Of a stretch of 64,000 nucleotides of DNA, positions 1 through 64,000 are shown one piece after another. The position numbers and the translations under genes are program-made. Position 1 is the stretch's first letter. Every line of letters starts with the position of its first letter. The notes under the pieces are model-generated. The model did not search any database. It saw nothing but the letters and a program-made list of their open reading frames with translations, and was not told the DNA's origin. The DNA lies in sequence record NC_025447.1; one strand, given 5' to 3'.

Positions 1-1
1 G

Positions 2-100
2 GTCTTCATGTTGTACGTGAAGCGTGGATTACTTGCAATCAAGACATTAACTGAAGCAACTGATGAAGATATGGATGGTGATAATACCTTTACCATGTGA
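2..100 (+). CDS. 3' end of a gene truncated by the window edge
   Basis: Open frame from base 2 to TGA at 98-100 (..DEDMDGDNTFTM*). Confidence 0.55.
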   Translation, partial: VFMLYVKRGLLAIKTLTEATDEDMDGDNTFTM

Positions 101-108
101 GGAAATAT

Positions 109-186
109 ATGTCTGAAAAGCCAAAAGAACCATTAGATCGTGATGATGATTTTTATGACGAACGATATGGAGATGATGATGAGTGA
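109..186 (+). CDS. 25-aa acidic micropeptide (MSEKPKEPLDRDDDFYDERYGDDDE)
   Basis: SD GAGGA before ATG109; below ORF-track cutoff. Confidence 0.45.
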   Translation: MSEKPKEPLDRDDDFYDERYGDDDE

Positions 187-430
187 ACATAGTGCTGTGC
201 TTAAAAAGATTTTAAAGGAACTTGATGGTGAGTTTAATGTCACAGAAGAAGAATATCAGCATTGGAAGAAAGGTTTTGAACAACTAACCGAGTATGATAA
301 AGTGTTCAATATGATTGGCGTAATTAGCCAGTACTTACTCGGTGGAGGACGTGCAAGTGCTTCAATTCTGGCATCTGCAATCATCTGTACATCACGATGG
401 TGTGATGAAAAAAGTTTGGAAGATTTCTAA
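179..430 (+). CDS. hypothetical protein
   Basis: ORF track 140..430; SD GGAG 169-172 favours ATG179. Confidence 0.65.
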   Translation: MSEHSAVLKKILKELDGEFNVTEEEYQHWKKGFEQLTEYDKVFNMIGVISQYLLGGGRASASILASAIICTSRWCDEKSLEDF

Positions 431-482
431 ATAAGATGCTATAATATATTATAGTACCTTAACAATATAAAAAGGATTTTAT

Positions 483-1343
483 ATGAAACCTATCCGAGTA
501 CTTTCTCTTTTTAATGGAATGAGTGTGGGATATATGGCATTGCAAGATGCTGGTATCCCAGTTGAAAAATATTATTCATCCGAAATTGATAAGTACGCAA
601 TAGCTGAATCTCAATCTAACTTTCCTGATATTATCCAATTGGGTGATGTAACTAAGTGGAGAGAATGGGATATTGAGTGGGACAAAATAGATTTATTAAT
701 GGGTGGTTTCCCATGCCAAGCCTGGTCAGTTGCAGGTAAACAGGGTGGTTTAAATGATATACGTGGGCAGTTATTTTTAGTAATGGTTGAAATTTTTGAT
801 CATATCAAAAGTCTCAATCCTAACTTGAAATTTCTGTTTGAAAATGTTAAAATGAAGGAAGATTTCAAAGAATACATTAATAGTATTTTAGGAATCACGC
901 CAGTACTGATAAACTCCCAGCATTATACGCCTCACTTCAGGCAGAGATATTACTGGTACAGTACTGATAAGCTTTTTATACCACCTGCATTATCCAATGC
1001 ACCTAAACTTCAAGATATTATTGAAGATGGTTGGTACACTGACAGAACCGCTTCGTACTGTATAGATGCTAACTATTTTAAAGGTGGTGATTGTAACCAG
1101 TACTTTAATAAATCCAGACGACAATTGGTGTTTCGTGATCCAGTGATTAATCGTCAATATCTATTAGAGAATGGCAAAAGAAATATTGACTATAGACACT
1201 TAAGTGTAGTAGAATGTTGTAAATTACAGGGTGTTCCTGAAGATTTCTTTAAAGTGTCTAGTAAGACACAAGCATACAAAATGCTTGGGAATGGATGGAC
1301 TATGCCAGTTATATCACATTTACTAAGAGAGATATTCTTTTGA
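483..1343 (+). CDS. DNA (cytosine-5)-methyltransferase
   Basis: C5-MTase motifs: I (SLFNG), IV (GGFPCQ), VI (ENV), VIII (RQRYYW), X (LGNGW). Confidence 0.92.
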   Translation: MKPIRVLSLFNGMSVGYMALQDAGIPVEKYYSSEIDKYAIAESQSNFPDIIQLGDVTKWREWDIEWDKIDLLMGGFPCQAWSVAGKQGGLNDIRGQLFLVMVEIFDHIKSLNPNLKFLFENVKMKEDFKEYINSILGITPVLINSQHYTPHFRQRYYWYSTDKLFIPPALSNAPKLQDIIEDGWYTDRTASYCIDANYFKGGDCNQYFNKSRRQLVFRDPVINRQYLLENGKRNIDYRHLSVVECCKLQGVPEDFFKVSSKTQAYKMLGNGWTMPVISHLLREIFF

Positions 1344-1825
1344 ACATAAACAAATACCAAACTTATATAAAACGTACAGAAAGTTTCAAACGGCTGGCTG
1401 TAAAATCTGAATTAGAATTTAATTTGTATTATCCTAATATTGGTGATGAGGTATTTTATTGCTCTCATTCAAAGAATGGAACTTTACTTAAATCGGGTAA
1501 AGGAACTATTGTTGATATGACCGCAAATTTCAGAGGTAAACTTAATGTAATGTACAAAGTACAAGATTCAAGTACTGAGTGTATTCATGAAGTGATGCAT
1601 AACATACCTGCATATCCAAAAGATTTTGTTCAGCTAATATCTCGAAGGGAGAAACCTATGTTTTATTGTGGTTATGACAAATTAACCAAACAAATTATTC
1701 CTAATACTATGGGAAAATTTAAAAGTGATGTGAAATCTGAACTTGAAAAGAAATTTGGCACGTCATGGGAAACTGAAAACGAGTTTATCGAAATTCGTTT
1801 AATTGAAATTACTATACTTGAATAA
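1340..1825 (+). CDS. hypothetical protein
   Basis: ORF track 1295..1825; likely TTG start overlapping the MTase stop. Confidence 0.65.
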   Translation: MNINKYQTYIKRTESFKRLAVKSELEFNLYYPNIGDEVFYCSHSKNGTLLKSGKGTIVDMTANFRGKLNVMYKVQDSSTECIHEVMHNIPAYPKDFVQLISRREKPMFYCGYDKLTKQIIPNTMGKFKSDVKSELEKKFGTSWETENEFIEIRLIEITILE

Positions 1826-1829
1826 TTAC

Positions 1830-1854
1830 AAATCCACGCATTGCGTGGATTTTT
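1830..1854 (+). terminator. intrinsic terminator
   Basis: AAATCCACG-CATTG-CGTGGATTT hairpin plus T run. Confidence 0.75.
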
Positions 1855-1867
1855 CATAGGTGCATAT

Positions 1868-2383
1868 ATGCCAATTCCTTATGTTAAAATTATTAATAAT
1901 ATTCTCGATTCATGGGAAGATGTTATTACTGGTAAAAAGCAACCATCACCAGTACATGCTTTATCTGGGAAACTTCAATTCAGAATGTCAAACCAAACTG
2001 AAACATTTAATAATCATGATATTTGCATTACATTAAAAACACCTATTAGTATTGTAATTAAAAAAAATAAAGATGATGAATTGACATTATCTATTGGTCG
2101 TGATAAAATCATTTTAAGTAATTTGTCTGAAGAAGAATTCTTTCAAAGAAGTACTATTATCGATATGAAAGATTTCACATATGAATCATTGGTTGAACTC
2201 AATACACGTTTTAACGATATTCAGGAACGATTGCGACCAATTCTTCGTATCGAAGAAGAAGCCTGGATTGAAAGTATTAGGAAGATGCAAGAAATGTTGA
2301 AAGAAAATATTAACAATCTGGGTAAAGCTACAATGGAATTTGGTAAAACTTTTAAACTGAACTTTTCAAAGGATCGTAAATGA
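1868..2383 (+). CDS. EExxFQxS-motif family protein
   Basis: SEEEFFQRSTIID; start moved to ATG1868, past the terminator. Confidence 0.75.
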   Translation: MPIPYVKIINNILDSWEDVITGKKQPSPVHALSGKLQFRMSNQTETFNNHDICITLKTPISIVIKKNKDDELTLSIGRDKIILSNLSEEEFFQRSTIIDMKDFTYESLVELNTRFNDIQERLRPILRIEEEAWIESIRKMQEMLKENINNLGKATMEFGKTFKLNFSKDRK

Positions 2384-2835
2384 AAATTGATAATTTGATT
2401 CATGTTTTAGGATCTTTACATAAAATATTATCACATCTACATGAGATAAAGAAACTGGGATTTAACATCTCAAATTCAATTGAAACTACATTTAAATATC
2501 AATCAATTACTGGTGATGGTTATTACATAATCGAATATACCTATGAAACCGATCCAGACTTCTATCCTCTTACGTTGAGAATTTATCCAACAAATCCGAG
2601 AGGAATTCACGACATATCATCAATTTCACTTGATCCAGATGGTGAAACGAGTATTGAATACAATAATGATTCAAAACCAGAATTTTACATTGATGATATT
2701 AAAATGATGTTCAACGATGAATATGTGTTCCAGCAAAGTACTGTGCATGATGTTGGAAGTACTAATGGACAATTTTGGAATACATGTTATTATCATATGA
2801 TTGAAATTTGTAAATTACTAAAAGGCGATGATTAA
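2380..2835 (+). CDS. EExxFQxS-motif family protein
   Basis: NDEYVFQQSTVHD; ATGA coupling. Confidence 0.75.
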   Translation: MKIDNLIHVLGSLHKILSHLHEIKKLGFNISNSIETTFKYQSITGDGYYIIEYTYETDPDFYPLTLRIYPTNPRGIHDISSISLDPDGETSIEYNNDSKPEFYIDDIKMMFNDEYVFQQSTVHDVGSTNGQFWNTCYYHMIEICKLLKGDD

Positions 2836-3218
2836 TGAAATACAGCATTGAAGTACATTACACTACAGGGGACACTGAAAATTGTTATGACGTTCTTAAT
2901 ACAATTGATATTCAATGGTCTTCTAAAGAGGAAGCAGTTGCTGCTTTACAGTGCCTAAAAGAGCATTGGGTGTTTTATATGAAGCAAGATAATTGCTATA
3001 CTAAAGAACACGAAACTATCGTTGAAAATGCTAAACAAAAAGAGTGGTTTGACCCAATATCACCAGAATATTCATTCTTGGTTAAAGTTGGCGATGTGAC
3101 AGTTCCATTACGAACACCGTGGAACGGCTACTTTGAAACTCTTCATAATGCACGAGTTGTCGCTGTTGATAATCCTGAGCAAATCGATTTCGATTCATTG
3201 GACTGGAAAAAACTATGA
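2835..3218 (+). CDS. hypothetical protein
   Basis: ORF track; TAATG coupling. Confidence 0.75.
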   Translation: MKYSIEVHYTTGDTENCYDVLNTIDIQWSSKEEAVAALQCLKEHWVFYMKQDNCYTKEHETIVENAKQKEWFDPISPEYSFLVKVGDVTVPLRTPWNGYFETLHNARVVAVDNPEQIDFDSLDWKKL

Positions 3219-3658
3219 CAGTACTGCACCAATTGAAGAAGGTTAAGCATCCAGTTGTATACGAGGATTGGAAACGACAGAAATTGATGGGTGATTTTTA
3301 TTTCCCAAAATCTAAAGTTCTTGCGAATTCAAGATGTACATATGTCACACATAATTATAAAGATACAGTATTTGTTGAAATGGGTTTCAATCCATCAAAT
3401 ACAATGTTCAGTACTAACCAGACATTTTACAAATTTCATATCAATAAAGATTCATTTTCTATTATGATTATAAAATTTTTAGTTGAAGATCTGGTATACA
3501 GTGAAGAAAGAGTTCCTTTATCATTAGTGGATATTCCTTATGATAATTTAGAGGAAATGTACTTCCAACAGTTGACAGTGCAAGAAAACTTCGGTATGAT
3601 AGGACTTCAAGAGTTAGAGATGATTAAGCAAATTCGTGATATCTACTTTAAGGAGTAA
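3215..3658 (+). CDS. EExxFQxS-motif family protein
   Basis: LEEMYFQQLTVQE. Confidence 0.75.
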   Translation: MTVLHQLKKVKHPVVYEDWKRQKLMGDFYFPKSKVLANSRCTYVTHNYKDTVFVEMGFNPSNTMFSTNQTFYKFHINKDSFSIMIIKFLVEDLVYSEERVPLSLVDIPYDNLEEMYFQQLTVQENFGMIGLQELEMIKQIRDIYFKE

Positions 3659-3660
3659 CT

Positions 3661-3804
3661 ATGCCAGTACGTAACAGTACTTCACGCTTTACGCTTCAAC
3701 AGAAAGCAGATCTTTTGAATATGGCTAACAAAGATTCTAATTTTTACTATCTAGTACTCGGTGGGTCAGTAGAAAAGATTGACCTACGTGAGTGTATGAA
3801 ATAA
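3661..3804 (+). CDS. 47-aa hypothetical protein
   Basis: SD AAGGAG; manually translated. Confidence 0.6.
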   Translation: MPVRNSTSRFTLQQKADLLNMANKDSNFYYLVLGGSVEKIDLRECMK

Positions 3805-3820
3805 CAAAAGGGGACTAAAA

Positions 3821-3991
3821 ATGAGTCTACGTGAATCATGGGAACAATTTAAAGAAGAGATTGGTTATCGTGGTGTTAAGATTGAAAAAATCAATCGAAC
3901 CGAAAGCATCAAAGCCAGTACTAATGGCACTACCTATGATCGTTATGATGAAAAGTATGGTTTGCATTCTAAACCGAAGGATACTGAATAA
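3821..3991 (+). CDS. 56-aa hypothetical protein
   Basis: SD GGGG; manually translated. Confidence 0.6.
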   Translation: MSLRESWEQFKEEIGYRGVKIEKINRTESIKASTNGTTYDRYDEKYGLHSKPKDTE

Positions 3992-4134
3992 TGGTATACA
4001 CTAACATTTTTACTGGTATTATGCGTAAATTTATTAATGGTACTGGATACGTATCTAATGACAACGGTAGTACATGGGTAAAAAATAATACGTCTGAATC
4101 TTTAGTAAAAAGTCTTCCGTATTATAAAGCTTGA
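3991..4134 (+). CDS. 47-aa hypothetical protein
   Basis: TAATG coupling; manually translated. Confidence 0.5.
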   Translation: MVYTNIFTGIMRKFINGTGYVSNDNGSTWVKNNTSESLVKSLPYYKA

Positions 4135-4159: not shown

Positions 4160-4191
4160 ACTCCTATATTAATTAAACGAGGATATACGAA

Positions 4192-7998: not shown

Positions 7999-8028
7999 AA
8001 TACCCAGTCAAGTACTGGGTATTTTTTT
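7999..8028 (+). terminator. intrinsic terminator containing AGTACT
   Basis: AATACCCAGT-CAAGT-ACTGGGTATT plus T run. Confidence 0.8.
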
Positions 8029-10659: not shown

Positions 10660-10995
<336 letters not shown>

Positions 10996-12185: not shown

Positions 12186-12599
<414 letters not shown>

Positions 12600-12656: not shown

Positions 12657-12694
<38 letters not shown>

Positions 12695-13056: not shown

Positions 13057-13809
<753 letters not shown>

Positions 13810-28232: not shown

Positions 28233-28234
28233 AG

Positions 28235-28265
28235 AAAAAAGGTTGGCTTATGCCAACCTTTTTTT
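28235..28265 (+). terminator. intrinsic (bidirectional-type) terminator
   Basis: A6-GGTTGGC-TTAT-GCCAACC-T7. Confidence 0.85.
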
Positions 28266-28299
28266 ATGGGATGAAGTAAAAGTTTGTGATATAATTATC

Positions 28300-28780: not shown

Positions 28781-28789
28781 TAAAAGTCC

Positions 28790-28818
28790 TTGACAGTTAT
28801 TAATCATTCGCGTAGAAT
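28790..28818 (+). promoter_or_regulatory. sigma70-type promoter
   Basis: TTGACA-17-TAGAAT. Confidence 0.75.
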
Positions 28819-28882
28819 ACGTAGTATTAGAAGCGAACAGACATCTCGAAGAGATGGATGATTAACCATTAAGGAATATCCA

Positions 28883-44873: not shown

Positions 44874-45128
44874 ATGTTTGCGTTGCGTAATAAAAACACT
44901 AAAGAATTATTATGTATTGATACCGTATGGGATTGTGCGGGTTCAACTACAGTTCTTGAAGAAGGAACTGGATATTGCGTGTTTGTTGTACATGATAGGA
45001 ATGAACTCGAATTATTACTTGCTGAGTTCAATGCTGGTGGTAATCCTAACAGTACTGAATACCCTGAGATTATCAATCCAGCACCTCCAGGTTCATATGA
45101 AATCCTACCACTATGGGTGTTGAAATAA
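44874..45128 (+). CDS. hypothetical protein (paralog of 47000..47269)
   Basis: MFALRNK..EYPE..YEIL. Confidence 0.75.
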   Translation: MFALRNKNTKELLCIDTVWDCAGSTTVLEEGTGYCVFVVHDRNELELLLAEFNAGGNPNSTEYPEIINPAPPGSYEILPLWVLK

Positions 45129-45508
45129 TGCGACAAATGTACAAAGTAACCGAGCTAAACAAGCGTCTGGTTAAACAATCTATGTTTGAGGATAAAGAGT
45201 CTTACTATAACTTTAAACGTGCTGTAGAGGCTGCTATCCACATTCAGAAGCTTAAAGAACGTGGTTGTATTATTCTGGAAAATGGTTCGGAAGTTGTAAC
45301 GGATGACTTTAGTGTAGCGTTTGATGTTTCACCTGATGGGACGCTATCAATGCCCCGCTTAGGAACTGGAAACATGACTGTTTGGGTTGGCTTCACTATG
45401 GGGAATGTACCTGGTACTGTGTACGTAGATGATGCGGAATTGAAAGACAGTTTCAAAAACTTATCTTATCTTGAACCACAATACGCACATGAAATGAATT
45501 TATTTTGA
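45128..45508 (+). CDS. hypothetical protein
   Basis: TAATG coupling. Confidence 0.75.
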   Translation: MRQMYKVTELNKRLVKQSMFEDKESYYNFKRAVEAAIHIQKLKERGCIILENGSEVVTDDFSVAFDVSPDGTLSMPRLGTGNMTVWVGFTMGNVPGTVYVDDAELKDSFKNLSYLEPQYAHEMNLF

Positions 45509-45509
45509 G

Positions 45510-45537
45510 TTGACAAACACATTCAGTACTGTATAAT
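45510..45537 (+). promoter_or_regulatory. sigma70-type promoter with AGTACT in spacer
   Basis: TTGACA-16-TATAAT; leader hairpin GGGATGA/TCATCCC. Confidence 0.7.
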
Positions 45538-45584
45538 GCTTATCAAGGGGATGAACTTCTCATCCCTACAATCGAGGAACTACC

Positions 45585-46139
45585 ATGATTACTTTTAAGA
45601 AAACTGCTAACCACATCCATGAAATCTACATTAACGGTCATAAAGCTGGCCTTCTTCGTTTACTCGCCCATCACCCTGATGCTACCGTATCTGATAATGA
45701 ACCTAAAGATTGGCGTGTCTTTTTCTTTGGAAAGTACAGTGATTTTCAAGTATCAAACCTGAAGAACATTCGTTCAGTATGCACGTTAACTGAAATTAAA
45801 GAAAAGTTAGCACAAGCATTGAAAACTAATCCAGATGGTGTTCTTCCACCTGATAACTTTGTAGAGAAAGGTTATGCCTTAGCTCATTTCAAAGATGGTA
45901 CTATTCAATCTATCAGTACTGAATATGAATATCATTGGACTGAGTACTTCACTTATGGTTCGAGTAATACATTGATGGATTCACGTAGTAAATTGGAAGA
46001 AGTACTGACTCGTATGAATGAACGCGAGCGTCAGTTATATGACAAACCAGAAATGTGGAGTTCAACTTACATTGACCGTATTGACTATGTTATTATGACT
46101 CCAATCTTTGACACTGCTTACTATGATTCTTTGAAATAA
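45585..46139 (+). CDS. hypothetical protein
   Basis: ORF track; SD GAGG. Confidence 0.8.
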   Translation: MITFKKTANHIHEIYINGHKAGLLRLLAHHPDATVSDNEPKDWRVFFFGKYSDFQVSNLKNIRSVCTLTEIKEKLAQALKTNPDGVLPPDNFVEKGYALAHFKDGTIQSISTEYEYHWTEYFTYGSSNTLMDSRSKLEEVLTRMNERERQLYDKPEMWSSTYIDRIDYVIMTPIFDTAYYDSLK

Positions 46140-46150
46140 GGATAACTTAT

Positions 46151-46327
46151 ATGAAACTACGTACTCGTAATCGACTGATGGATGCACTGTACCATGAACA
46201 GCTTTCACTGAATGAAGTGAAGCGTCAGTTAATGTACACATATCAGTTTCCCGCTCGCATTGCAAAACAACGTGCTAAAGAATTGCTGAAAGAAGCAATC
46301 GAGTACTGGGAATCTGATTCGTACTAA
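46151..46327 (+). CDS. 58-aa hypothetical protein
   Basis: SD AAGG; manually translated. Confidence 0.65.
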   Translation: MKLRTRNRLMDALYHEQLSLNEVKRQLMYTYQFPARIAKQRAKELLKEAIEYWESDSY

Positions 46328-46366
46328 TATTACGTGATATGTCACGTTAATTAAGTGAGGCGATAA

Positions 46367-46618
46367 ATGAAAATATTATTAGTTCTAATACTACTAATAG
46401 TTTTACCATTTACTTTAGTATCCCCTGGACTTGCATGGAATGTATTTGTGTACTTAGTATGTACTATTGTAGTAAATGGTATCTTGTTCTTAGTTCTATT
46501 CATAAATGGAATAGGACACGGTGGAGGATGGACCAGTACTGCTGATATTGTACATAAAACCACTATGTCTTTATTTGTAATGTGGAATTTGTTCTGGACT
46601 TGGTTTGTGTTCTTCTAA
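46367..46618 (+). CDS. 3-TM small membrane protein
   Basis: Hydrophobic; SD GAGG. Confidence 0.65.
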   Translation: MKILLVLILLIVLPFTLVSPGLAWNVFVYLVCTIVVNGILFLVLFINGIGHGGGWTSTADIVHKTTMSLFVMWNLFWTWFVFF

Positions 46619-46626
46619 TTAAAAAT

Positions 46627-46998
46627 ATGAATATAGATTTGAAAGGTGCAACACGAACTGTTATCCTCATTGGGGAATATGCTATCAAGATTCCAACCTT
46701 TAAAAGTTGGAAGCTATTCTTAACAGGGATGATAGCTAACCTCAATGAACGTTCGTGGATGCAGTACTCCAATCGTAGTGATAGTAGTATCTGTCCTACG
46801 TTGTGGTCATCATGTACTGGACTAGTAACTGTACAGAAACGTTGTAAGCCAGTGCAACATAGGGGTTTATTTTGGGTGGAGTTGTGTGCATTAGCATCTA
46901 AATCAGAGTTGAGTACTGACTTCTTCTATTCAGATGCGAAGCCAGAAAACTTTGGGTATCTGGGTGGTAAGTTAGTTAAACTTGATTATGGAGATTAA
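46627..46998 (+). CDS. minimal protein-kinase-like domain protein
   Basis: GATRTV, YAIKIP, DAKPENFG, LDYG. Confidence 0.65.
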   Translation: MNIDLKGATRTVILIGEYAIKIPTFKSWKLFLTGMIANLNERSWMQYSNRSDSSICPTLWSSCTGLVTVQKRCKPVQHRGLFWVELCALASKSELSTDFFYSDAKPENFGYLGGKLVKLDYGD

Positions 46999-46999
46999 T

Positions 47000-47269
47000 A
47001 TGTACGCACTGTATAATAAAGAAAAGAAACGATTTGCTAAGGTTGAAATTTCGATTGATACATTTGATATGTTGGAGTACTGTATTGTAACTGACCTATA
47101 TGCTAACTTGTATTACGTTCTTGATGACGTATCAGTACTGCAACGATTGCTTGAGAATTCCAAAAGTCAATGCCAGGGCATCCATGATGGTTCATCTTAT
47201 GAAACACCTGAGTGTTCCTACGGCTATCTGGACGGGTATGAGATTGTGAAGTTGGGGATCATTGAATAA
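47000..47269 (+). CDS. hypothetical protein (paralog of 44874..45128)
   Basis: MYALYNK..YETPE..YEIV. Confidence 0.75.
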   Translation: MYALYNKEKKRFAKVEISIDTFDMLEYCIVTDLYANLYYVLDDVSVLQRLLENSKSQCQGIHDGSSYETPECSYGYLDGYEIVKLGIIE

Positions 47270-51564: not shown

Positions 51565-51593
51565 TTGACAGTACTAACAACGTGTAGTACTAT
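51565..51593 (+). promoter_or_regulatory. sigma70-type promoter with two AGTACT sites
   Basis: TTGACA-17-TACTAT. Confidence 0.6.
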
Positions 51594-54405: not shown

Positions 54406-54434
54406 AAAAATCCAGTACTTGATAGTACTGGATT
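54406..54434 (-). terminator. minus-strand terminator built from two AGTACT sites
   Basis: TCCAGTACT-TGAT-AGTACTGGA with A5 on its left. Confidence 0.7.
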
Positions 54435-54445: not shown

Positions 54446-55108
54446 ATGATGAAAACAAAATTAGGTTTGTTTTATAAAAATTATTTCGTTAAACAGCGTA
54501 AATTTATAAAAAAATATTTCTCTGGTGAGAAGTCTAGTCCTATAATTTTTAAAAGACCAAGTTATAATACTTACTTAGCTGGTGCTAAACAGTCTAAGAA
54601 ATTTATTACTCTTTTACATAAAAACAAAATTAAAGCTTCTTATGTTGAAACGAGAAGAAACTCATCAATAACTCCTGGTGATTTTATTGAGTACGGATGT
54701 TTCAATATTAAGTACAATGATAATACATACTTTATGGATATTGATTGTAATACATCCAATCTTTTTAACATTGTAGTAAATCCATTAAAACAATATAATG
54801 TTTATGGTGATTCTATTATCAAATTAATCAAAAACAAAGATAGCTTTGATTTTGAAATAAATGTTTTAGATGATAATTTTGACGAAGTACCAGTAAACCC
54901 TGAAATCTGTGATATTTTAAACAGTTTAAAAGGTAGTACCTACAATATATCATCTGATTTAATGTTTCAGTACTCATTAATCCATAAAGATATTGAAAAG
55001 TATATTGAATGCTCCAAAATTTTGAATTATCTTTACGATGAATTTAAAAAGAGTTCTAAAATAACCGCATACACTTTGTACAATATTCCTAAAATGGTGA
55101 ATCTTTGA
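54446..55108 (+). CDS. EExxFQxS-motif family protein (divergent)
   Basis: SSDLMFQYSLIHKD. Confidence 0.7.
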   Translation: MMKTKLGLFYKNYFVKQRKFIKKYFSGEKSSPIIFKRPSYNTYLAGAKQSKKFITLLHKNKIKASYVETRRNSSITPGDFIEYGCFNIKYNDNTYFMDIDCNTSNLFNIVVNPLKQYNVYGDSIIKLIKNKDSFDFEINVLDDNFDEVPVNPEICDILNSLKGSTYNISSDLMFQYSLIHKDIEKYIECSKILNYLYDEFKKSSKITAYTLYNIPKMVNL

Positions 55109-56241
55109 CAAATACAGTACTGGCAACTCCACCGTCTGTAATATATTGTCCAGTACTGTAAATTTGTATACCATCGGTTAAGTAAGTTCTGTATAAAGTT
55201 GCTGTAACATATACGTTATTCATATTCATCTCTATTGGTAGTACACATTTGGTATAGGCCGACACATCTGTTTGTGTACCTATACCTAATTGACCTGCGT
55301 TATCGCCTGTGTTATAACCAGTTGCGTAAACACCTAATGAAGTTATAATATGATTAGAAAAATATGAATAACCCACACTGCTTCTTATTATATCACCTGG
55401 TGCTTGTGTTGTTTGTCTTAACGAAATATATGTTTGTGATGTAGAACCATTTGCTAACTGACCAAAGTATTGTCCACCACCATGATATGCAAATAATTTA
55501 TTAGTACTATTATTACTTGCTATAGCAAAAGCGAAGTAACTTGAGTTTGTTGTATAATCTTTCACCGTATAGGTATTAGTTATTTGAGAACATAACGTGT
55601 ACTTTGAATATAACGTCATGTCGGTTGTACCTACGCCTGATATTGCACCAGTATAATACAATCTCCCATCGGTTCCAATAAATCCTTGCATAAGAAAATT
55701 TGCCAGTATTTTGGATGGTGTTACTCCAGTAGGTACTGTTCCTTGTACAAATGATGAAAGTGAATCGGTACTTCTACCATTTCCCAGTTGTCCATAACTA
55801 CCATAACCCGTATTCCATATCGTGTTGTCTGTACATAATACGCTTAATGCACCTGCACTAACTGCAATTTGTTTTATTGTTTTTCCAAGTGCTGTTATTC
55901 TATCAAACACTATCTTTGCAGAAGCCCACGTTGTTGACTTATCAGTTGATAAACCGAATGATGCACCATTTCCAGCATACCACATCGTATTATCTTTCTT
56001 TTTAATTAATGTTGACTCATACCCGAACCCATAGATCTTCTACGTTTGTATTGCACAAAACCCATTTGGTTTGTGTTATAATATTACCTATACCCATTTG
56101 CCCAAACTCTTGAGAGCCTCTACTGTACAACGTACCATCTGACATAAGGGCAAAAACTGTTGTATCAGATGAAGCTATTTTTGTAACAGAAGGTTGTATG
56201 TTCTTTTTTGATGATGTGATAATTCTTCCAAAGGGTAGCAT
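55089..56241 (-). pseudogene. RCC1/BLIP-II-like repeat protein with MLPF tag, split by a +1 frameshift (or error)
   Basis: 56017..56253 and 55089..55985 fuse at TGG-G-TTC (about 56025-56031); YGQLG motifs. Confidence 0.7.
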
Positions 56242-56280
56242 TGTATCCTCCAAATGTAAATCGTTATTATATTTAGGACA

Positions 56281-56309
56281 AAAAAATGCCAGTACTTTAG
56301 TACTGGCAT
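56281..56309 (-). terminator. terminator with twin AGTACT
   Basis: ATGCCAGTACT/AGTACTGGCAT plus T6 on the minus strand. Confidence 0.8.
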
Positions 56310-56321
56310 AGTTTTATAGTA

Positions 56322-57431
56322 TTATTTCGGCATTGTAATTGCAGACCATGAGTTCGTGGTGATAGGACCTGGTACATACAAAAAAGAACCACAAGCATAA
56401 ATTTGATTATTACCATCAAATACTATACTAAAATGTGCACATGTGTATAATGATGATTTTTCTGGGTTGTAATTATCTAAAGTTAGTGTATTGGTGAATC
56501 TACTCAAACCACCTCCCGAACCATTTCTACCAAATTCACCAGTACTGTATATCTTTCCTTCGGTTGTTGCGTACATATTAACATATGAAGTCGAACTTGA
56601 TTTTGATATTTTATGTATCTTACTATCAATAGGAGTGGAGTTAAATGTAAATGGATATACTTGTGTGTTCGTTGTAATACCGTTACCAAGTTGACCAATA
56701 TATTGCCAACCTGCGTTGTATATATTGCTGGCTGAATAAGCAAGAGTACCAGTACTGTTACCACCAAATAGTTTAACACTTGTTAACCTGCTTACTAGTG
56801 TAGTATACTGTCCGGGACTTACGCCAAGTGAACCATACCCACTGCTCCCGCAACCGAGAAGTTCATTATTTGATGTTAATATTAATGTGTTATTCTGTGT
56901 ACCCAATATATCAAGGACTGTATTAGCTCCGGTATTAACAACTGAAACAAAAGTACTCTGAGCAGTGGAATACCCACCACCGAGTGAATAGTTACCATTC
57001 ATGCCTCTACCATAAACAATCGAACCACTAGCATCAACGTAGTGCATTGTATCTGCACCAATTGATATCATTTTAATATTAGATATATGTGGAAATGAAG
57101 AAGTAACATTTAAACCACCCAACGGAATCATAGTATTTCCTGTGCCTAATTGTGTGGTAACTCCATGCATTATGAATTCTTCACCCTTGAGATAAAGAAT
57201 ATTGTACGCACCAGCCCATGCATCAGTAACACCTTCTGAAATTAATATCCAAGTATTTCTTGTTGCTGTATTTTCAACGTTTAACTGCAAATACGTATTA
57301 ACCCCACAACCATAAAGTGAACCATCGCCATAGAGGACGTACAAATTATCAAGACCGCACAGTACTTTCTTTATCTTTGGTGCTTCAGGTGCAATATTTC
57401 CGTACTTAACCATTCTTGTGAAAGGTAACAT
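56322..57431 (-). CDS. RCC1/BLIP-II-like beta-propeller protein with MLPFxRMxKYGN tag
   Basis: LYGCGVNTYLQL, GNYSLG, IGQLGNG repeats. Confidence 0.8.
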   Translation of the reverse strand: MLPFTRMVKYGNIAPEAPKIKKVLCGLDNLYVLYGDGSLYGCGVNTYLQLNVENTATRNTWILISEGVTDAWAGAYNILYLKGEEFIMHGVTTQLGTGNTMIPLGGLNVTSSFPHISNIKMISIGADTMHYVDASGSIVYGRGMNGNYSLGGGYSTAQSTFVSVVNTGANTVLDILGTQNNTLILTSNNELLGCGSSGYGSLGVSPGQYTTLVSRLTSVKLFGGNSTGTLAYSASNIYNAGWQYIGQLGNGITTNTQVYPFTFNSTPIDSKIHKISKSSSTSYVNMYATTEGKIYSTGEFGRNGSGGGLSRFTNTLTLDNYNPEKSSLYTCAHFSIVFDGNNQIYACGSFLYVPGPITTNSWSAITMPK

Positions 57432-57441
57432 AATTTTCTCC

Positions 57442-58621
57442 TTAAATTTGTGGCAATTGGTATTCAGTTAAAGTCCATGTACCAACAACTGTCCCTACTG
57501 GAGACATACCAGTGTAGTATAATTTCCCATTCACATATGCAAATAATGCATTGTCATTCGCAGCAACCAACGATGTTGACGGATCATAAACTACAGAATT
57601 TGGAAATTGTGCTTGGACGAAAATTGAAGCATTATTAGATGAATTGTTACCAAGCTGTCCATAATTATTATACCCTGTTCCAAAAATACGACTTCCATTT
57701 CTATATAATAATCCCCTAGGATTTTGTGAATATGTTTGTATAAATTCAAAATCGGAAACATTAGTTAATTGTAAATAAGTACTTTGTGGCGTTAAAGATA
57801 TCTTATTAGTATTAGATAGAACACCATTTCCTAATTGTCCGTGAATTTTGTGACCCTACACCATATAGCGGATAAGTATTATCTACATTAAGAACTATAC
57901 CCAACATATTGTTATATGAAATTATATCAACGGGGTACTGGCCTGTAGGAAAACTATACTTTGTCCAACTCGACAAAGTATCAGTAGCAGAACCAGTTAA
58001 CAATGTACCAGTACTAGTTTTACCACATCTCCATGCTGAATTATCATTTTTAATTATCCAAGTTGGACTATTGAAAAATGAACTAACCTTTTTAACATTA
58101 ATATTAACCTGTGTAAATGATGTAAGTGTAGATGAACTACTACCCAACTCATAGGTTGAATTATCACCTATTGCGTAAAGAACACTATCATTTGTTAGTA
58201 AAAACATATTACGAACATTTGGATATATCTCCTTGATATTATCCACATTAAAACCTGAAAAATAAGACGTACAATCAACAAATGTAGTACTTTGAACTGC
58301 ACTAGATGTACCAGTCCAAAGGTTCCAACCTGCATAATAAAATTTATTATCATTGGTCTGAACTAAGCTATATGAAGCATTCCTTGTGCACCAAAAATTT
58401 TTCACATTTTGCATTAAGCGAACCCATTTGGTCTGTGTCGTTGTATTTCCAAGACCGAATATACCAGCATTGTTACCGCCAATACCCCACAAATCACCGT
58501 TCTTATACAGAATCATCAATGTGTTGTTGGTAAAAGCCGATGGTGCTTGCATTTTAATTACACTAGATTCATATATAGGTGCTATATTCCCGTACTTAAC
58601 CATTCTTGCAAAAGGTAACAT
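57442..58621 (-). pseudogene. RCC1-like MLPF-tag protein split by a +1 frameshift (or error)
   Basis: A second frame from 57840 to TAA at 57442 encodes 132 aa starting GQLGNG. Confidence 0.7.
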
Positions 58622-58687
58622 AAATCCCTCCTTTATTTGTTATACTATATTTAATACAAAAAAGAAAAGCCAGTATCAAGTACTGGC
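58622..58687 (-). repeat. array intergenic cassette (terminator, TAAATA/TATAA, SD)
   Basis: Near-identical copies at 59911-59976, 61135-61200, 62354-62417, 63163-63227. Confidence 0.85.
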
Positions 58688-58730
58688 ATTATGTTAATTA
58701 ATAGTGTCTTTCTAAACACATTTCGTGCCT

Positions 58731-59910
58731 TTATTCAGGTAGTACCAATTTCTTCATTGTAACTTGTTGTGTACCTGGACTCTGTTCCTGAAACATAGAC
58801 CCGTTACCACACCAGTACACCTCATTAGTCCCCACTAACGCGTATAACACACCAGAACCACCTTGTACTGAAAATGCATTAACATCTGGTGCAACATCCA
58901 TATCCTCATATTGTACCTGGTGGTAATAAGATCTTTCTGATGCAGTAGTAACAGGCCAACCAAGAGGAACACCACTACCACATGTATAAAGTTTACCATT
59001 CTGTGTCATTGCCATTATAAAATAATTCAAACTGTGATTGTTCATCGACCCAGCATCTGGTATAATACCACTAATTTCGGGAGTAGCACTAAATGGACTC
59101 ATTGTAACCTTCGTGTCTCCATACCCAATTCCTAAACAATAATCAGTGTTTATCCCAGCAGTATATACTCTAATATTACCCTTATTCGATGTAAGTACTG
59201 AAGTCGTCAAATTAGTACATGAAATACCAATAACTGTTCCAGATATATCAGTACTTACTGTAAATGTGGATAGTTTAGATGCACTTGTACCTAGGTTATA
59301 ACTTGCGTTATTACCACATCTGTAATATTGACCATTTTTAACATAATGTAAAGCACCACCAAAGTGTGTACCAGCAATCATAGTAACACCAGTATCAATC
59401 TTAATCGGTGTCGCTTTTGCACCAGAAACACCCAGTTCACCTCCAGTATTACTACCTATCCCGTATAAATCACCATTGCTTAACATAATTAATAAAGTAC
59501 CATTTGAAGCGACAGTCTCAGTAGAAGCTATATCTTGAACTGTAGTAAGGCTTGGTATTGTAGACAATATTGATGTAATATTTGTCCATCCTGGAACAGG
59601 CGATTTGACCACACCAAGGTATCCCATTTGTCCTGCTAAGTAAAATTCTCCTTCAGTCGTAAGTATAATGGTCCCTGCGGATAAACACCAAACATTAGCA
59701 ACTTTATATGGACACTGTATCCATCCATCCATTTTGTAAATACGCAGTACTATCATTTCCTAGCCTATATTGTGCACCATTACCACGTAGATATAAATTG
59801 CCACTATCGAACAACATACCCACATGTGTTGTAGATGTAGCAATCTTCAGTACACCCGAAGGTGCTGGTTTAACATTCCCGTACTTAACCATTCTTGTAA
59901 AAGGTAACAT
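58731..59910 (-). pseudogene. RCC1-like MLPF-tag protein split at (ATGG)3 (or error)
   Basis: 59704..59910 and 58731..59756 fuse by removing 1 or 4 nt at about 59720-59732. Confidence 0.7.
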
Positions 59911-59976
59911 AAATTCCTCCTTTATTCATTATACTATATTTAATACAAAAAGAAATGCCAGTACTTGAGTACTGGC
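59911..59976 (-). repeat. array intergenic cassette
   Basis: GCCAGTACT/AGTACTGGC hairpin, TATTAAATATAGTATAAT, SD. Confidence 0.85.
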
Positions 59977-59982
59977 TTTATG

Positions 59983-61134
59983 TCAATAAACATCCCAAGG
60001 TAATGGTGTCTTTCTAAACCCATACCTAGTTGCGTTCTGCCCATCTCCGGCAATGTATCTACCGGTCCCACACTGATATAATTCAGTACTGCTACATATC
60101 GCACCACCAATAGTACCACTACACCACTGTGTTATATTAGAATATAATATTGGTAAATCACTACATTTGGTATATAATGCAACAGTGGCAGCCCCGCTCG
60201 GACCACCAAACACACTTCGGTTCGAACCCGTGTAATATATGCCGTCTGGACTCATAAATGCAGATGTATAAGTTGTACTGCAATCCACTGGACTTCTTAT
60301 ATTATTAAGATCGCTTGGGTATGCTCTAGCACCATATGTGTATACATTACCAGCAGTAGTAATACCATTACCTAACTGACCATCATTTTGTCCACCACAT
60401 GTAACCAACGATGCAGTACCGGAAACAATTGCAGTAGCATTATACGAAGTACCTATAGCAATAGAAGCACCCGCCCTTTGGGATGGGGTAGGAACTGCGG
60501 CTGCGTTCCCCTGACCTAATTCACCATTGACATTTCTTCCCCATCCATATACCGAGGTGGTATCTAATTGACATAGTACTGTACCATAACTAAACGTATA
60601 TCGTATATCTTTCACAGCCGATGGTAAACCACTAACTTTAGTTGCAACACTAATAACTCCAGAAATACCAGTAACTCCAGCGTTTGCGTTCATATTACGT
60701 CCATATGCGTATAAAGAACCATCAGCAGTTTTAATATGCATCATGCCATCTGTGCAATATAATGCATCGATGCTATCCACTACAACCGCTCCCATACTAG
60801 ACGTTATATCGTTCCACCCAAGCGTTGTAGTACTAGAAATTAAGTTATTTCCGGCGTAAAGTATTCTATTATCATTTGTAACAACTACAGTATAATTGGT
60901 AGTAACGCCAATTAATCTAACATTCTCATGTATCTTAGACCACATTCCTATTGAATTTGTGTTAGCGTCCAGAAATCCCAACTGACCAGCGGTATTATAT
61001 CCAATACCCCACACATCACCTTCACTGTCCAATAACACTTCATGTGAAAAGCCAATCTTAAAATCTTTTATTGTAGGAACTACCGGAACTGGTGCAATAT
61101 TCCCGTACTTAACCATTCTTCCAAAAGGTAACAT
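59983..61134 (-). CDS. RCC1/BLIP-II-like protein with MLPF tag
   Basis: True start ATG61134; GYNTAGQLG, GRNVNGELG, GQNDGQLG. Confidence 0.85.
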   Translation of the reverse strand: MLPFGRMVKYGNIAPVPVVPTIKDFKIGFSHEVLLDSEGDVWGIGYNTAGQLGFLDANTNSIGMWSKIHENVRLIGVTTNYTVVVTNDNRILYAGNNLISSTTTLGWNDITSSMGAVVVDSIDALYCTDGMMHIKTADGSLYAYGRNMNANAGVTGISGVISVATKVSGLPSAVKDIRYTFSYGTVLCQLDTTSVYGWGRNVNGELGQGNAAAVPTPSQRAGASIAIGTSYNATAIVSGTASLVTCGGQNDGQLGNGITTAGNVYTYGARAYPSDLNNIRSPVDCSTTYTSAFMSPDGIYYTGSNRSVFGGPSGAATVALYTKCSDLPILYSNITQWCSGTIGGAICSSTELYQCGTGRYIAGDGQNATRYGFRKTPLPWDVY

Positions 61135-61200
61135 AATTCCCTCCTTATTCATTATACTATATTTAATACAAATAAGAAAGCCAGTATCAAGTACTGGCTT
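61135..61200 (-). repeat. array intergenic cassette
   Basis: Hairpin, TATTAAATATAGTATAAT, AAGGAGGG. Confidence 0.85.
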
Positions 61201-61204
61201 TAAT

Positions 61205-62353
61205 TCATTGTATAAATGACATATCAACTTCGGTATATCTTGTAGTGTACTGCCCAGAACTTCCACCCATTACTAGATTGGAAAAACCAGTATAAAATAA
61301 CTTACCTTCATCTGTGAGAATCAAACTACCGATGTTATTCAGTACTAAACTGTAAGAACTATTAAAATTTTCATAAGACTTGGTATAATAGAACTGATTT
61401 GTAAGATTACCAACACCCAATTGCCCACCAGTGTTAACCCCAGTTGCAAATATTGTAGTCCCAAATCTGAGAATATGTGAAGCCATATTACCAACACAAC
61501 AGTATATATTCTGTACATCCGAATTCAATAAAGTTGGTGTTGTGTATTGCTTAAGTGTTGTGCCTGTGCCGAATTCATTACCATATGATAGTCCATATTG
61601 TGTACCACAAGCGTACAATTTATTATCATCTTTAATAAAAAATGTACTCTGATAACTTACATCGACATCTATAACATTAGTCTGTATTCTAACAACTCCA
61701 GTACTAGCAGTTTGATTGCCTGTCCCTAACTGATAGTAAGTGTTAATACCACAACCCCATAATGTATTATCTTCTTTTAGGTATATGTTACCAACAGCTT
61801 TTTTTACCGATGATATGGCTTCAATCTTAACAAAGGCGTTAAATGAATTTGTATTTGTGCCATTACCAAAAGATGATCTGGTTGATGTGCTGTTTGTTCC
61901 GCAGCAATATAAAGTACCATCAGTTGTTATCAAATTCACTTTAAGATCACTGTAACTACTCATGTATTTTATATCAGAAACATTAATACCACTGGATGTT
62001 ATCCATGAAGTACAATCTGTCCACGTGTTATAATATGCACCTGAACCAGAAAACGCACTCGGACTTCCAGTTATAAACACTTTTCCAGTACCGTCTTCTT
62101 CATATAATTGACAACCACTACTGTTATTTTCCAAAAGGACTCTTTTAACATTAGTCGCACTAAGAATAAATTTACTCGACGCTACACCAGTTCCAGTACC
62201 CTGACTGACTGCCGCTGATGCATACAAATTTTTCGTGTATGTATCATGAAAATACATAGCACTACCGCCGGAATATATTTTAAAACGTGTACTAGGATCA
62301 GGCGGGTTAGGTGCAATATTCCCGTACTTAATCATTCTAACAAAAGGTAACAT
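61205..62353 (-). CDS. RCC1/BLIP-II-like protein with MLPF tag
   Basis: True start ATG62353; GINTYYQLG, GVNTGGQLG. Confidence 0.85.
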   Translation of the reverse strand: MLPFVRMIKYGNIAPNPPDPSTRFKIYSGGSAMYFHDTYTKNLYASAAVSQGTGTGVASSKFILSATNVKRVLLENNSSGCQLYEEDGTGKVFITGSPSAFSGSGAYYNTWTDCTSWITSSGINVSDIKYMSSYSDLKVNLITTDGTLYCCGTNSTSTRSSFGNGTNTNSFNAFVKIEAISSVKKAVGNIYLKEDNTLWGCGINTYYQLGTGNQTASTGVVRIQTNVIDVDVSYQSTFFIKDDNKLYACGTQYGLSYGNEFGTGTTLKQYTTPTLLNSDVQNIYCCVGNMASHILRFGTTIFATGVNTGGQLGVGNLTNQFYYTKSYENFNSSYSLVLNNIGSLILTDEGKLFYTGFSNLVMGGSSGQYTTRYTEVDMSFIQ

Positions 62354-62417
62354 ATTTCCCTCCTTATTCATTATACTATATTTAATACAAATAAGAATGC
62401 TAGTATCAAGTACTGGC
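62354..62417 (-). repeat. array intergenic cassette
   Basis: Same cassette sequence. Confidence 0.85.
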
Positions 62418-62424
62418 CTATATT

Positions 62425-63162
62425 TTAGACTGAATTGTTAGGATAATATCTCCCACGTCCCCATATTATTCGCACAGCACCACCACCAGCAGCCGTATAA
62501 GAAAAATTATCCCATATACTACCACCACCACCATACATCTTACCAGCACCACCACTACCAGCACCACCATTATATGAACCATCGTATCTACCGCCAATAC
62601 CATTAGCACCTTGAACAATGATACCAGTACCACCACCCGTACCAATGAACGAGGTATTATAGAATGCACCACCACCACCGCCGCCGCCAGCACCATTTTC
62701 ACCAGTGATTGCATCTCCGTTACCACCTTTACCAGTGTAGCCACCAGCACCACCACCAATGACTGCACCACCACTTACACCAGCGTTGCCCCCATTACCA
62801 CCACCATCATTAATAGCGTTAGCAGCTTTCCCACCTAGTCCACCAACCCTATATTCACCAGTGAAGCTAACACATAGTTTTTCAGTTCCACGATATAAAC
62901 CGTTTTCAACTGCTGTAGTAGTGTTGGGATGTGTAAGAGAAACACTTAAGTACTCACCACTAGTAACCGGAATATTATTACGCCACGATAAGCCGCCACC
63001 AGCACCACGTTGACCACCCGGCGAAATAACACATACTGATATTTCGGTAACGCCAGCAGGAACTGTAAATTGTGTTGTTCCTATTGTCGTGATTAATTGT
63101 TCACCATCTGGCTTATATTCAATTTTATTCCCGTACTTTACCATTCTTCCAAAAGGTAACAT
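62425..63162 (-). CDS. glycine-rich protein with MLPF tag
   Basis: True start ATG63162; GGG-rich body, GAVRIIW near the C-terminus. Confidence 0.8.
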   Translation of the reverse strand: MLPFGRMVKYGNKIEYKPDGEQLITTIGTTQFTVPAGVTEISVCVISPGGQRGAGGGLSWRNNIPVTSGEYLSVSLTHPNTTTAVENGLYRGTEKLCVSFTGEYRVGGLGGKAANAINDGGGNGGNAGVSGGAVIGGGAGGYTGKGGNGDAITGENGAGGGGGGGAFYNTSFIGTGGGTGIIVQGANGIGGRYDGSYNGGAGSGGAGKMYGGGGSIWDNFSYTAAGGGAVRIIWGRGRYYPNNSV

Positions 63163-63227
63163 ACTTCCTCCTTTATTCATTATACTATATTTAATACAAA
63201 TAAGAAAGCCAGTACTTTGTACTGGCT
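63163..63227 (-). repeat. array intergenic cassette
   Basis: Same cassette sequence. Confidence 0.85.
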
Positions 63228-63233
63228 AAATTA

Positions 63234-64000
63234 TTACAATTGTCTAGGTGTATCCAGTACATATCTATTTGTAGTAGGACCACCATCATCATATGTTCCG
63301 GTTGAATATATATTTTTCATATCAGCAGTTAGGAAAGTACGATACGAACCGCGATATATTTTTATTTTATCATACATAGAATATGTTATTCCTGACGGCA
63401 ATGGACATGCAGTAAATTTACCAATAGTAACATTAGAACCAACACCCAATGAACCAGCATAGGCACTCGCATTTAAACCAGTTGCATATACACCTGTACT
63501 CGTAATTAGTATACTAGATTGTGTTGGGTATCCAGTATGAATTGAATACAAAGTACCAGGTGGTAGAGTAGTACTGTTATTTCCTAAAACTCCATTAACA
63601 GTGCTAGATGTAGTGTTATTTCCCCATGCTCCATTATTAGCTAACCCACCCACTAGGAACTGACGTGCTCCTGTATTTGGATTTTCAACTAAAGCACTTA
63701 CTGCACCAGTTGAGCATCCTGTGTATTGTAACGTTTTTGTGTATGTTGTATTTGGTTGATATAAAGTATATTCATTATATGAAGTCCATGTAGTCGCGGA
63801 ACTTATACCGGATGTAACACCACCAATATATAAATTATTTTGTTTATCAAACAACAATACACAGTTATTTGTTGACTGTATTTGTGCAATATCAACATTA
63901 GGTGTGACCGCTTTTACAAATGAACCATCGGTTATTTCATAAGTAGTTCCCGTTCCATCGGCGAATTGTCTAGCACTGTTCCACCCTGTACTCCATATTG
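63234..64000 (-). CDS. RCC1-like array protein, 5' end beyond the window
   Basis: Frame stays open from 63857 to the window end (IWSTGWNSARQF..). Confidence 0.8.
   Translation of the reverse strand, partial: IWSTGWNSARQFADGTGTTYEITDGSFVKAVTPNVDIAQIQSTNNCVLLFDKQNNLYIGGVTSGISSATTWTSYNEYTLYQPNTTYTKTLQYTGCSTGAVSALVENPNTGARQFLVGGLANNGAWGNNTTSSTVNGVLGNNSTTLPPGTLYSIHTGYPTQSSILITSTGVYATGLNASAYAGSLGVGSNVTIGKFTACPLPSGITYSMYDKIKIYRGSYRTFLTADMKNIYSTGTYDDGGPTTNRYVLDTPRQL

Follow-up and report, generated by a model that had tools for sequence, protein, structure and literature searches.

Why a bacteriophage would multiply a restriction-type palindrome is the question raised by the 64,000-nucleotide stretch of DNA analyzed here (the window), in which the hexamer AGTACT recurs far more often than its composition predicts. 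Megablast placed the window at positions 62001-126000, plus strand, of the 121Q record (NC_025447 / KM507819) with 100% identity. 121Q is an Escherichia phage, a 348.5-kb jumbo myovirus of the genus Asteriusvirus within the Rak2-like group. Phage genomes are known to avoid short palindromes, and the therapy-relevant, well-sequenced jumbo coliphages (121Q, PBECO4, RaK2, GAP32, CBB, and dozens more) reverse this for AGTACT. The original prediction, made from the letters of the window, held that the word is enriched about 10-fold genome-wide through positive selection for a binding or modification site of a phage protein. The rest of the 121Q genome was added so that counts could be made genome-wide. 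Open-access articles describing CBB, RaK2, Sharanji, or fEgEco12, or comparing jumbo-phage genomes, do not mention the enrichment, and full-text searches of the open-access literature for the word gave no report of it.

AGTACT is overrepresented throughout the 121Q genome

The window contains 185 copies of AGTACT (2.9 per kb), against 19.1 ± 4.4 (maximum, 32) in 100 dinucleotide-preserving shuffles, which amounts to a 9.7-fold excess with a z score of about 38. Across the whole 348.5-kb genome, 903 copies (2.6 per kb) compare with 99.8 expected; here and below, expected counts are those of a first-order model except where another null is named. All 10-kb bins of the genome were enriched (11 to 65 copies, against about 2.9), save two islands outside the window. 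The earlier hand counts of 14 copies at 1-4000 and 9 at 45001-47000 were reproduced exactly, and the accompanying expectation of 1.4 per 4 kb lies near the recomputed 1.2, so that the observation is, if anything, stronger than had been stated. AGTACT is by far the most deviant hexamer of the window, followed by its own extensions CAGTAC and GTACTG, and its best form is the octamer CAGTACTG, with 40 copies against 0.8 expected in the window and 194 against 4.4 genome-wide.

Repeats are not the source of this excess, because all 185 window sites, and 902 of the 903 genomic sites, lie in distinct 26-mer contexts. An order-4 Markov model expects 151 copies in the window, and high-order models of this kind seem to account for AGTACT because they are fed AGTAC and GTACT, whose own excess stems from AGTACT; AGTAC is followed by T in 67% of cases, against a background of 32%. 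Nor is the excess reducible to a general bias toward GTAC, the first of two compositional explanations that the original prediction had allowed for. Among the 2411 GTAC tetramers in the genome, the A...T flank pair alone is in excess (903 versus 213), with the other 15 flank pairs at or below expectation.

The excess is maintained at the DNA level

Of the window sites, 155 are genic, 29 are noncoding, and 1 is mixed, and noncoding DNA is the denser of the two, with 4.1 sites per kb against 2.7 per kb for coding DNA. At least one copy is present in 61 of the 81 window genes of 300 nucleotides or more, against about 12 expected. The genic sites occupy all three frames, as AGT-ACT (66 sites), xAG-TAC-Txx (36 sites), and xxA-GTA-CTx (53 sites), and the three examples given previously were read correctly (AGT ACT at 2758 in gene 94, xxA GTA CTx at 497 in gene 91, and xAG TAC Txx at 330 in gene 90). 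When synonymous codons were permuted inside each gene, with protein sequence and codon usage kept, 43.5 ± 5.6 genic copies were obtained in the window against 155 observed, and 223 ± 12.5 genome-wide against 779 observed. Codon composition, the second explanation allowed for, thus leaves most of the excess standing.

The pressure instead distorts the choice among synonymous codons. Ser-Thr pairs are spelled AGT-ACT in 66 of 129 cases (51%), versus 18.5 expected (14%), and where a tyrosine codon falls between AG and T, TAC is used in 34 cases and TAT in 3, against a background in which TAT is twice as common. The dipeptides Ser-Thr (129 versus 83.5) and Val-Leu (166 versus 109) are themselves overrepresented, and AGTACT has therefore shaped proteins. 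The presence of the word in all frames and in noncoding DNA, together with the distorted synonymous codons, bears out the earlier argument that amino acid usage is not the cause, and the excess is maintained at the DNA level. The window also encodes a tRNA-Ser with anticodon ACT (positions 13464-13555, plus strand) that would decode AGU, the serine codon inflated by AGTACT; AGT accounts for 405 of 1281 serine codons and AGC for 68. An A at the wobble position of a tRNA anticodon is uncommon in bacteria. The pressure for AGTACT thus bends codon choice, dipeptide use, and perhaps the tRNA set.

The excess is common to five genera of Enterobacterales jumbo phages

Each relative was represented by one stretch of 22 to 50 kb, and the host by a single 50-kb sample of E. 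coli K-12. AGTACT is in excess in Klebsiella phage RaK2 (119 versus 12 expected), Cronobacter phage GAP32 (253 versus 14), Pectobacterium phage CBB (85 versus 12.5), and Yersinia phage fHe-Yen9-04 (82 versus 11). With 121Q and four metagenomic relatives included, the enrichment ranges from 6- to 18-fold, and the trait is common to five genera of Enterobacterales jumbo phages. No enrichment was found in the sampled stretches of three sister phages, Vibrio phage 2.275.O (9 versus 6), Pseudomonas phage PA5oct (3 versus 12), and Agrobacterium phage Atu_ph07 (3 versus 5), or in E. coli phage T4 (5 versus 10). The host sample holds 3 copies against 4.3 expected, or 0.06 per kb (one per 16 kb), compared with one per 385 bp in the phage.

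Stretches of 78 bp with three copies of AGTACT were sought in IMG/VR, and at least 119 loci were returned. Among the matches listed, dispersed enrichment was confined to RaK2 and four Rak2-like contigs, two of which are only 45 to 53% identical in protein; the remaining matches listed were tandem or collagen-like repeats, and unrelated viruses with the same trait were set aside on that basis. A megablast search of E. coli genomes with a synthetic AGTACT array gave no match, the query itself being pointless. AGTACT can serve as a one-line metagenome classifier for the clade.

The same phages exclude another short word. GCGC is absent from the window (0 versus 29 expected) and from the 121Q genome (0 versus 178), as it is from RaK2 (0 versus 18), GAP32 (0 versus 55), CBB (0 versus 38), and fHe-Yen9-04 (0 versus 20). 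Every AGTACT-rich genome or contig tested lacks it entirely, and the AGTACT-poor relatives that were measured have normal numbers: Vibrio phage 2.275.O, 40 versus 35; PA5oct, 43 versus 43; and T4, 61 versus 69. The AGTACT excess and the GCGC loss arise at the same node of the phage tree. In the host sample, GCGC is frequent, with 373 copies against 405 expected (7.5 per kb). About 28 other palindromic hexamers are avoided in 121Q, and dozens of hexamers, palindromic and asymmetric alike, are at zero (observed/expected: GAGACC, 0/59; CAGCTC, 0/57; CTCCTC, 0/52; CCATGG, 0/47; TGGCCA, 0/43). Against this background, AGTACT has been multiplied ninefold although it is a ScaI/Eco255I-type word, which is the opposite of restriction site avoidance.

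AGTACT sites are symmetric, irregularly spaced, and conserved above background

The sequence context of the sites is itself symmetric. The -1 position is C in 46% and G in 7.8% of cases (G being depleted 2.2-fold), so that G is disfavored directly 5' of the word and C directly 3' of it; positions -3 and -4 are rich in T, and positions -7 and -8 are rich in A. Spacing is near Poisson, with a mean of 385 bp and a coefficient of variation of 1.18, and no regular spacing, periodicity, or helical phasing was found. The distribution along genes is flat, with no positional bias.

Conservation of individual sites was assessed by aligning window positions 20000-44000 to two Asteriusviruses (83% and 88% identity), with frame-matched hexamers as controls. 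Orthologous sites were kept in 37 of 57 cases versus 22.7 expected (p = 1e-4) in the first comparison and in 41 of 62 cases versus 31.2 expected (p = 0.009) in the second, and the three aligned genomes have 11, 6, and 14 lineage-private sites. Because the sites are conserved above background, yet turn over and follow Poisson spacing, the density of AGTACT appears to be under selection, with moderate constraint on each site. The differences between genomes touch all half-site positions and include both transitions and transversions. The one-mismatch neighbors of AGTACT stand at 1.2 to 2.2 times expectation, the single low case being AGGACT/AGTCCT (0.59). Mixed substitutions and the lack of a strongly depleted precursor are not the pattern of a single directed repair pathway, and on both grounds a mechanism like very short patch (VSP) repair was ruled out. 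In its excess, its turnover, and its lineage specificity, AGTACT behaves as a density-selected genomic word of the class that includes the uptake signal sequence (USS) of Haemophilus, the DNA uptake sequence (DUS) of Neisseria, and Chi.

AGTACT occupies fixed places in promoters and terminators

About 25 to 30 strong sigma-70 promoters have the form TTGACA-N9-AGTACT-G-TATAAT, or carry TTGAC-AGTACT over the -35 box. The early sigma-70-type promoter TTGACTAAATAGTTC-AGTACT-GTATAAT (positions 12187-12215, plus strand) has the word in the spacer, beside the -10 box, with sister promoters at 12666-12693 and 13425-13452. Another, TTGACAGAAGATATC-AGTACT-GTATAAT, lies at 30615-30643 on the plus strand, with more at 34925-34952 and 45510-45537, and the form overlapping the -35 box is found at 30963-30990 and 51565-51591. 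GAP32, which belongs to a different genus, has a promoter that reads AGTACT-TTGACA-N10-AGTACT-T-TATAAT, so a fixed place for AGTACT in early promoters is common to two genera. About 97% of the sites lie outside promoters (86% are genic), and the word was rejected as a mere sigma-70 promoter element for this reason.

Many intrinsic terminators follow the design GCC-AGTACT-loop-AGTACT-GGC, and their folding z scores range from -3.5 to -6.4. The terminator ACCCAGTCA-AGTACT-GGGT, followed by a T-run (positions 8001-8028, plus strand), has the word in its stem/loop (-13.7 kcal/mol; z, -3.7). The hairpin TCC-AGTACT-TGAT-AGTACT-GGA (54409-54434, plus strand) has it in both arms (-15.5 kcal/mol; z, -6.4). 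The terminator GCC-AGTACT-AA-AGTACT-GGC, with a T-run, belongs to an RCC1-repeat gene (56285-56310, minus strand; -18.3 kcal/mol; z, -6.0), and the same design recurs at 59954-59979, 58670-58692, 61181-61203, 62400-62422, and 63205-63228. This region, from window position 55089 to 64000 and on to record position 131,255, holds about 15 paralogous RCC1-repeat (beta-propeller) genes arrayed on the minus strand, and every one of them ends in a near-identical terminator made of two AGTACT copies. In the tRNA-Gly(TCC) gene (10682-10754, plus strand), AGTACT forms tRNA positions 28 to 33 (window 10709-10714). All three settings named in the original prediction, promoters, terminators, and tRNA-Gly, were thus found in place; together they hold less than 15% of the sites.

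Outside the window, record positions 130,000-155,000 have the top AGTACT density, 65 per 10 kb, with the peak at 130 to 150 kb. The genes of this block are very small, and each is served by a promoter and a terminator of its own. A direct terminal repeat of roughly 21 kb is present once in the 121Q record, as mapped from relatives whose records begin at the physical end, and a repeat of 21 kb has been described (PMC13070987). On this mapping, we infer that the density peak coincides with the terminal repeat holding the early genes.

An ACT-free island retains an asymmetric form of the word

At record positions 161,804-169,313 (7.5 kb, outside the window), ACT is entirely absent from the plus (mRNA-sense) strand, against about 45 copies expected. 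A gap of this length is 16-fold the longest expected, no other trinucleotide shows anything comparable, and AGT is at a normal level inside it. In place of AGTACT, the island has 41 copies of AGTACA in a single orientation (5.5 per kb), distributed over the frames as 15/12/13. The counterpart in ECO103 is an 8.2-kb ACT-free run with 44 copies of AGTACA, and that in TH47 is a run of 6,976 nucleotides with 41 copies, with island proteins only about 55% identical. A sequencing artifact or hypermutation was rejected, the island being kept in both phages with an ordinary substitution spectrum; its conservation there means that it is real and under strong selection. That the island is a single transcription unit was unsupported. 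Its genes are uncharacterized paralogues restricted to Asteriusvirus. The island appears to show that the pressure for the word continues where its symmetry is forbidden. Since ACT is read strand-specifically here, readers of single strands, such as a primase or an RNase directed at ACU, stay in play, and possible causes of the island include an ACU-specific RNase and strand-specific priming.

A dimeric DNA-binding protein may read AGTACT

The perfect palindromy, the symmetric flanks, and a selection for density that acts on duplex DNA without regard to coding are best accounted for by a homodimeric DNA-binding protein specific to this clade. The reading that we tentatively favor, and regard as a serious possibility short of a probable one, is that AGTACT is the binding site of a homodimeric, sequence-specific double-stranded-DNA-binding protein peculiar to the Enterobacterales Rak2-like jumbo phages. 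The dimeric nature of this reader is suggested by the symmetry of its site; that it is phage encoded and serves in self-marking or early shut-off is speculative. It would occupy phage DNA at high density and leave host DNA almost bare, so that AGTACT density would act as a positive mark of self. Such a mark is favored because the host is almost devoid of AGTACT, because these phages have neither a nucleus nor hypermodified bases, and because restriction-type words have been purged. Asteriusvirus Sharanji forms no phage nucleus, and its DNA is spread diffusely through the cell (PMC11895373); digestion of fEgEco12 DNA with ten ordinary enzymes gave the predicted cuts (PMC13070987), so that this DNA is not hypermodified. 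In early promoters, accumulated reader may shut off early transcription, a role proposed because, in about 25 of them, AGTACT falls between the -35 and -10 boxes or overlaps the former. The selection put forward originally is supported by the maintenance of the word at the DNA level, its conservation, and its independent gains in each lineage, and a sequence-specific reader would follow naturally; that this reader is a phage protein, and that it serves in coating, packaging, replication marking, or self signaling, stays speculative.

Searches of Pfam, PHROGs, and protein folds yielded no reader candidate tied to AGTACT. The 84-amino-acid basic early-region protein of gene 305 (record 150,456-150,710) is kept in the GAP32 early region and in Klebsiella phage Muenster. 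It was rejected as a DNA-binding candidate for its ParE/RelE/YafQ-like toxin fold (PF24732), and one source names a homologue a YafQ-like ribonuclease toxin. Gene 417 encodes a Dam-family enzyme (PF05869) whose family occurs in about 1800 unrelated phage records, a spread that makes its phyletic profile uninformative, and it was set aside as a reader. Gene 283 (record 143,769-144,038; 89 amino acids; pI 9.7; no Pfam family) has homologues confined to exactly the motif-positive clade, with about 70% identity between Escherichia and Klebsiella genera, and sits 2 to 8 kb from the physical left end, within the terminal repeat. It is a candidate on phyletic grounds only.

Several observations weigh against a dimeric reader. 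Pfam scans of all 146 window proteins and of 130 small proteins from elsewhere found no sequence-specific DNA-binding domain beyond the sigma factor. The one conserved, basic, clade-matched early protein that was modeled, a gene 283 orthologue, gave an all-beta AlphaFold model (pLDDT 77) with no significant neighbor in the PDB (best E value, 0.33; TM score, 0.35). The asymmetric AGTACA of the island, in one orientation, means that strict twofold symmetry is not essential and that a strand-specific reader is possible. The placement in promoters and terminators may reflect a genome-wide pressure acting wherever the sequence is free to vary, and a constant drive from biased repair can mimic selection. 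In addition, the relatives are represented by stretches of 22 to 50 kb rather than whole genomes.

Two alternatives concern priming and RNA. The T4-type primase of the phage may start lagging-strand primers at 5'-(A)GTACT-3', with a cryptic 3' T; chance alone would make so stringent a site too scarce, and its density would therefore be selected, the palindrome serving both strands. We consider this unlikely. Six bases would correspond to one cryptic base plus a pentaribonucleotide, which is the length of T4 primers, density would be selected without phasing, and the trait tracks the clade and hence its primase. The island, with one strand free of ACT and the other bearing 41 copies of TGTACT, is the pattern expected if an ACT core is read single-stranded, but no gain is evident from barring one island strand. 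Known primases also need just three bases, the nonpalindromic GTACT is enriched only 1.5- to 2.2-fold against 9-fold for the palindrome, which is more than multiplicative, and the fixed position in promoter spacers is left without a reason. Alternatively, AGUACU may be a functional element of transcripts, the palindrome yielding the same RNA word from either strand. The island bans ACT on the mRNA-sense strand only, and the early region encodes the toxin-fold protein of gene 305, but AGTACT is densest in noncoding DNA and occurs in nontranscribed promoter spacers, and exact palindromy with symmetric flanks would be a coincidence. An RNA signal is extremely improbable.

Three further alternatives concern modification, a neutral drive, and a host factor. 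It is quite unlikely that a phage methyltransferase, such as the product of gene 417, modifies AGTACT and that the modified sites are what matters. Type II methylases typically have palindromic hexamers as their targets, these phages encode several methylases, RaK2 DNA resists many restriction enzymes (PMC3622015), and the gene 417 product may have this specificity. However, the evidence on each enzyme weakens this half of the original prediction. Gene 91 (positions 483-1343, plus strand) encodes a short C5 cytosine DNA methyltransferase of 286 amino acids, closest to DNMT3 catalytic domains, and bisulfite sequencing found methylated CpG in RaK2 DNA (Simoliunas et al.; PMC3622015). It is probably a CpG methylase, and it was rejected as an AGTACT methylase, the word containing no CpG. 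The N6/N4 DNA methyltransferase gene that fHe-Yen9-04 carries beside endonuclease VII was likewise rejected, having no counterpart in 121Q; the corresponding 837-bp interval (record 326,508-327,345) is free of open reading frames, so the gene appears lost or never gained. The Dam family occurs in many unrelated phage records, as noted above, the digestion pattern of RaK2 suggests ordinary Dam/GATC methylation, and the predicted cutting of fEgEco12 DNA by ten enzymes also speaks against modification, which does not by itself explain the advantage of more sites. A neutral drive, in which biased repair or gene conversion during T4-like recombination turns near-cognates into functionless AGTACT, would imitate conservation as well as gain. 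The recombination set is complete (UvsX/Y/W-like and gp46/47-like proteins and endonuclease VII), and VSP repair shifts oligomer abundance in E. coli. We nevertheless hold such a drive to be quite improbable: no single precursor is depleted, gains and losses fall at all three half-site positions with mixed substitutions, a 9- to 44-fold effect with protein changes is far above known repair biases, and the fixed promoter placement is unexplained.

Finally, it is very unlikely that AGTACT recruits a host protein such as SlmA, so that phage DNA filling the cell would block division. The SlmA-binding sequence (SBS), GTGAGTACTCAC, is a 12-bp palindrome centered on AGTACT in which G1, T2, A4, and G5 are strongly needed and position 3 must be a purine (PMC3020112), and Sharanji makes cells filament as its DNA spreads through them (PMC11895373). 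The trait is, moreover, confined to Enterobacterales phages. However, Vibrio also possesses SlmA, and the Vibrio relative lacks the trait. No full site (GTRAGYRCTYAC) and only 20 half sites occur in 121Q, the -1 position prefers C and is depleted in G, and SlmA tolerates a CG or TG center where the phage requires TA (AGTGCT/AGCACT are only 1.7-fold enriched). An SlmA site as such was ruled out on its flanks.

A word multiplied this strongly implies an abundant, so far undescribed sequence-specific reader, in phages whose genes mostly lack an assigned function. Its discovery would reveal how a 350-kb genome with neither a nucleus nor modification is organized, protected, or replicated in the cytoplasm. 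ScaI-type systems should kill these phages unless AGTACT is protected. Sharanji grows on E. coli K-12, which opens the question to direct testing, with CAGTCCTG and AGTACA as contrast duplexes to CAGTACTG.

Comparison with known genomic words and marks

AGTACT resembles USS and DUS in being a short word present about once per kb or more densely, in all frames and with effects on peptides, and in forming terminator hairpins from inverted pairs while sites turn over at a maintained density. USS and DUS differ in being asymmetric 9- to 12-mers of cellular genomes that are read by competence machinery, whereas AGTACT is a palindromic hexamer or octamer of a lytic phage with no uptake step. Chi (GCTGGTGG) and the FtsK-orienting polar sequences (KOPS) are likewise short words, overrepresented genome-wide, that tell an enzyme what is self DNA, but they lack symmetry and are skewed between strands; AGTACT is symmetric, occurs at a far higher density, and is rare in the host sample. 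SBS shares the same central six bases and is read by a dimeric helix-turn-helix protein tied to a division block, and its flanks are absent and partly disfavored in the phage, with no full site in 348 kb. ScaI and Eco255I recognize the same hexamer, which phages would normally avoid. A possible functional analogue is the hypermodification of T-even phages, in which hydroxymethylcytosine, read by Alc and endonucleases II and IV, tells phage DNA from host DNA. The T-even mark is one of chemistry, and an AGTACT mark would be one of sequence composition.

Such a mark might be paired with the exclusion of GCGC. Each genome has about 900 copies of AGTACT, a word about 40-fold scarcer in the host sample, and 0 copies of GCGC. 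That GCGC is excluded absolutely, and in several genera, suggests some agent encountered in all infections, possibly a nuclease of the phage directed against host DNA. It is conceivable, if rather unlikely, that a two-word bar code replaces chemical modification, with AGTACT as the self mark (for coating or licensing and for early shut-off) and GCGC as the target of a phage nuclease on host DNA.

Other features of the region

Directly downstream of the RpoD-like sigma factor gene, window positions 28233-28954 comprise 720 bp without an annotated gene, and the UE-S1 record has a repeat region annotated at the corresponding place. The E. coli Chi sequence is also frequent in 121Q: the plus strand has 18 copies and the minus strand 11, where the first-order model, the only one applied to it, predicts about 1.5 for each strand.

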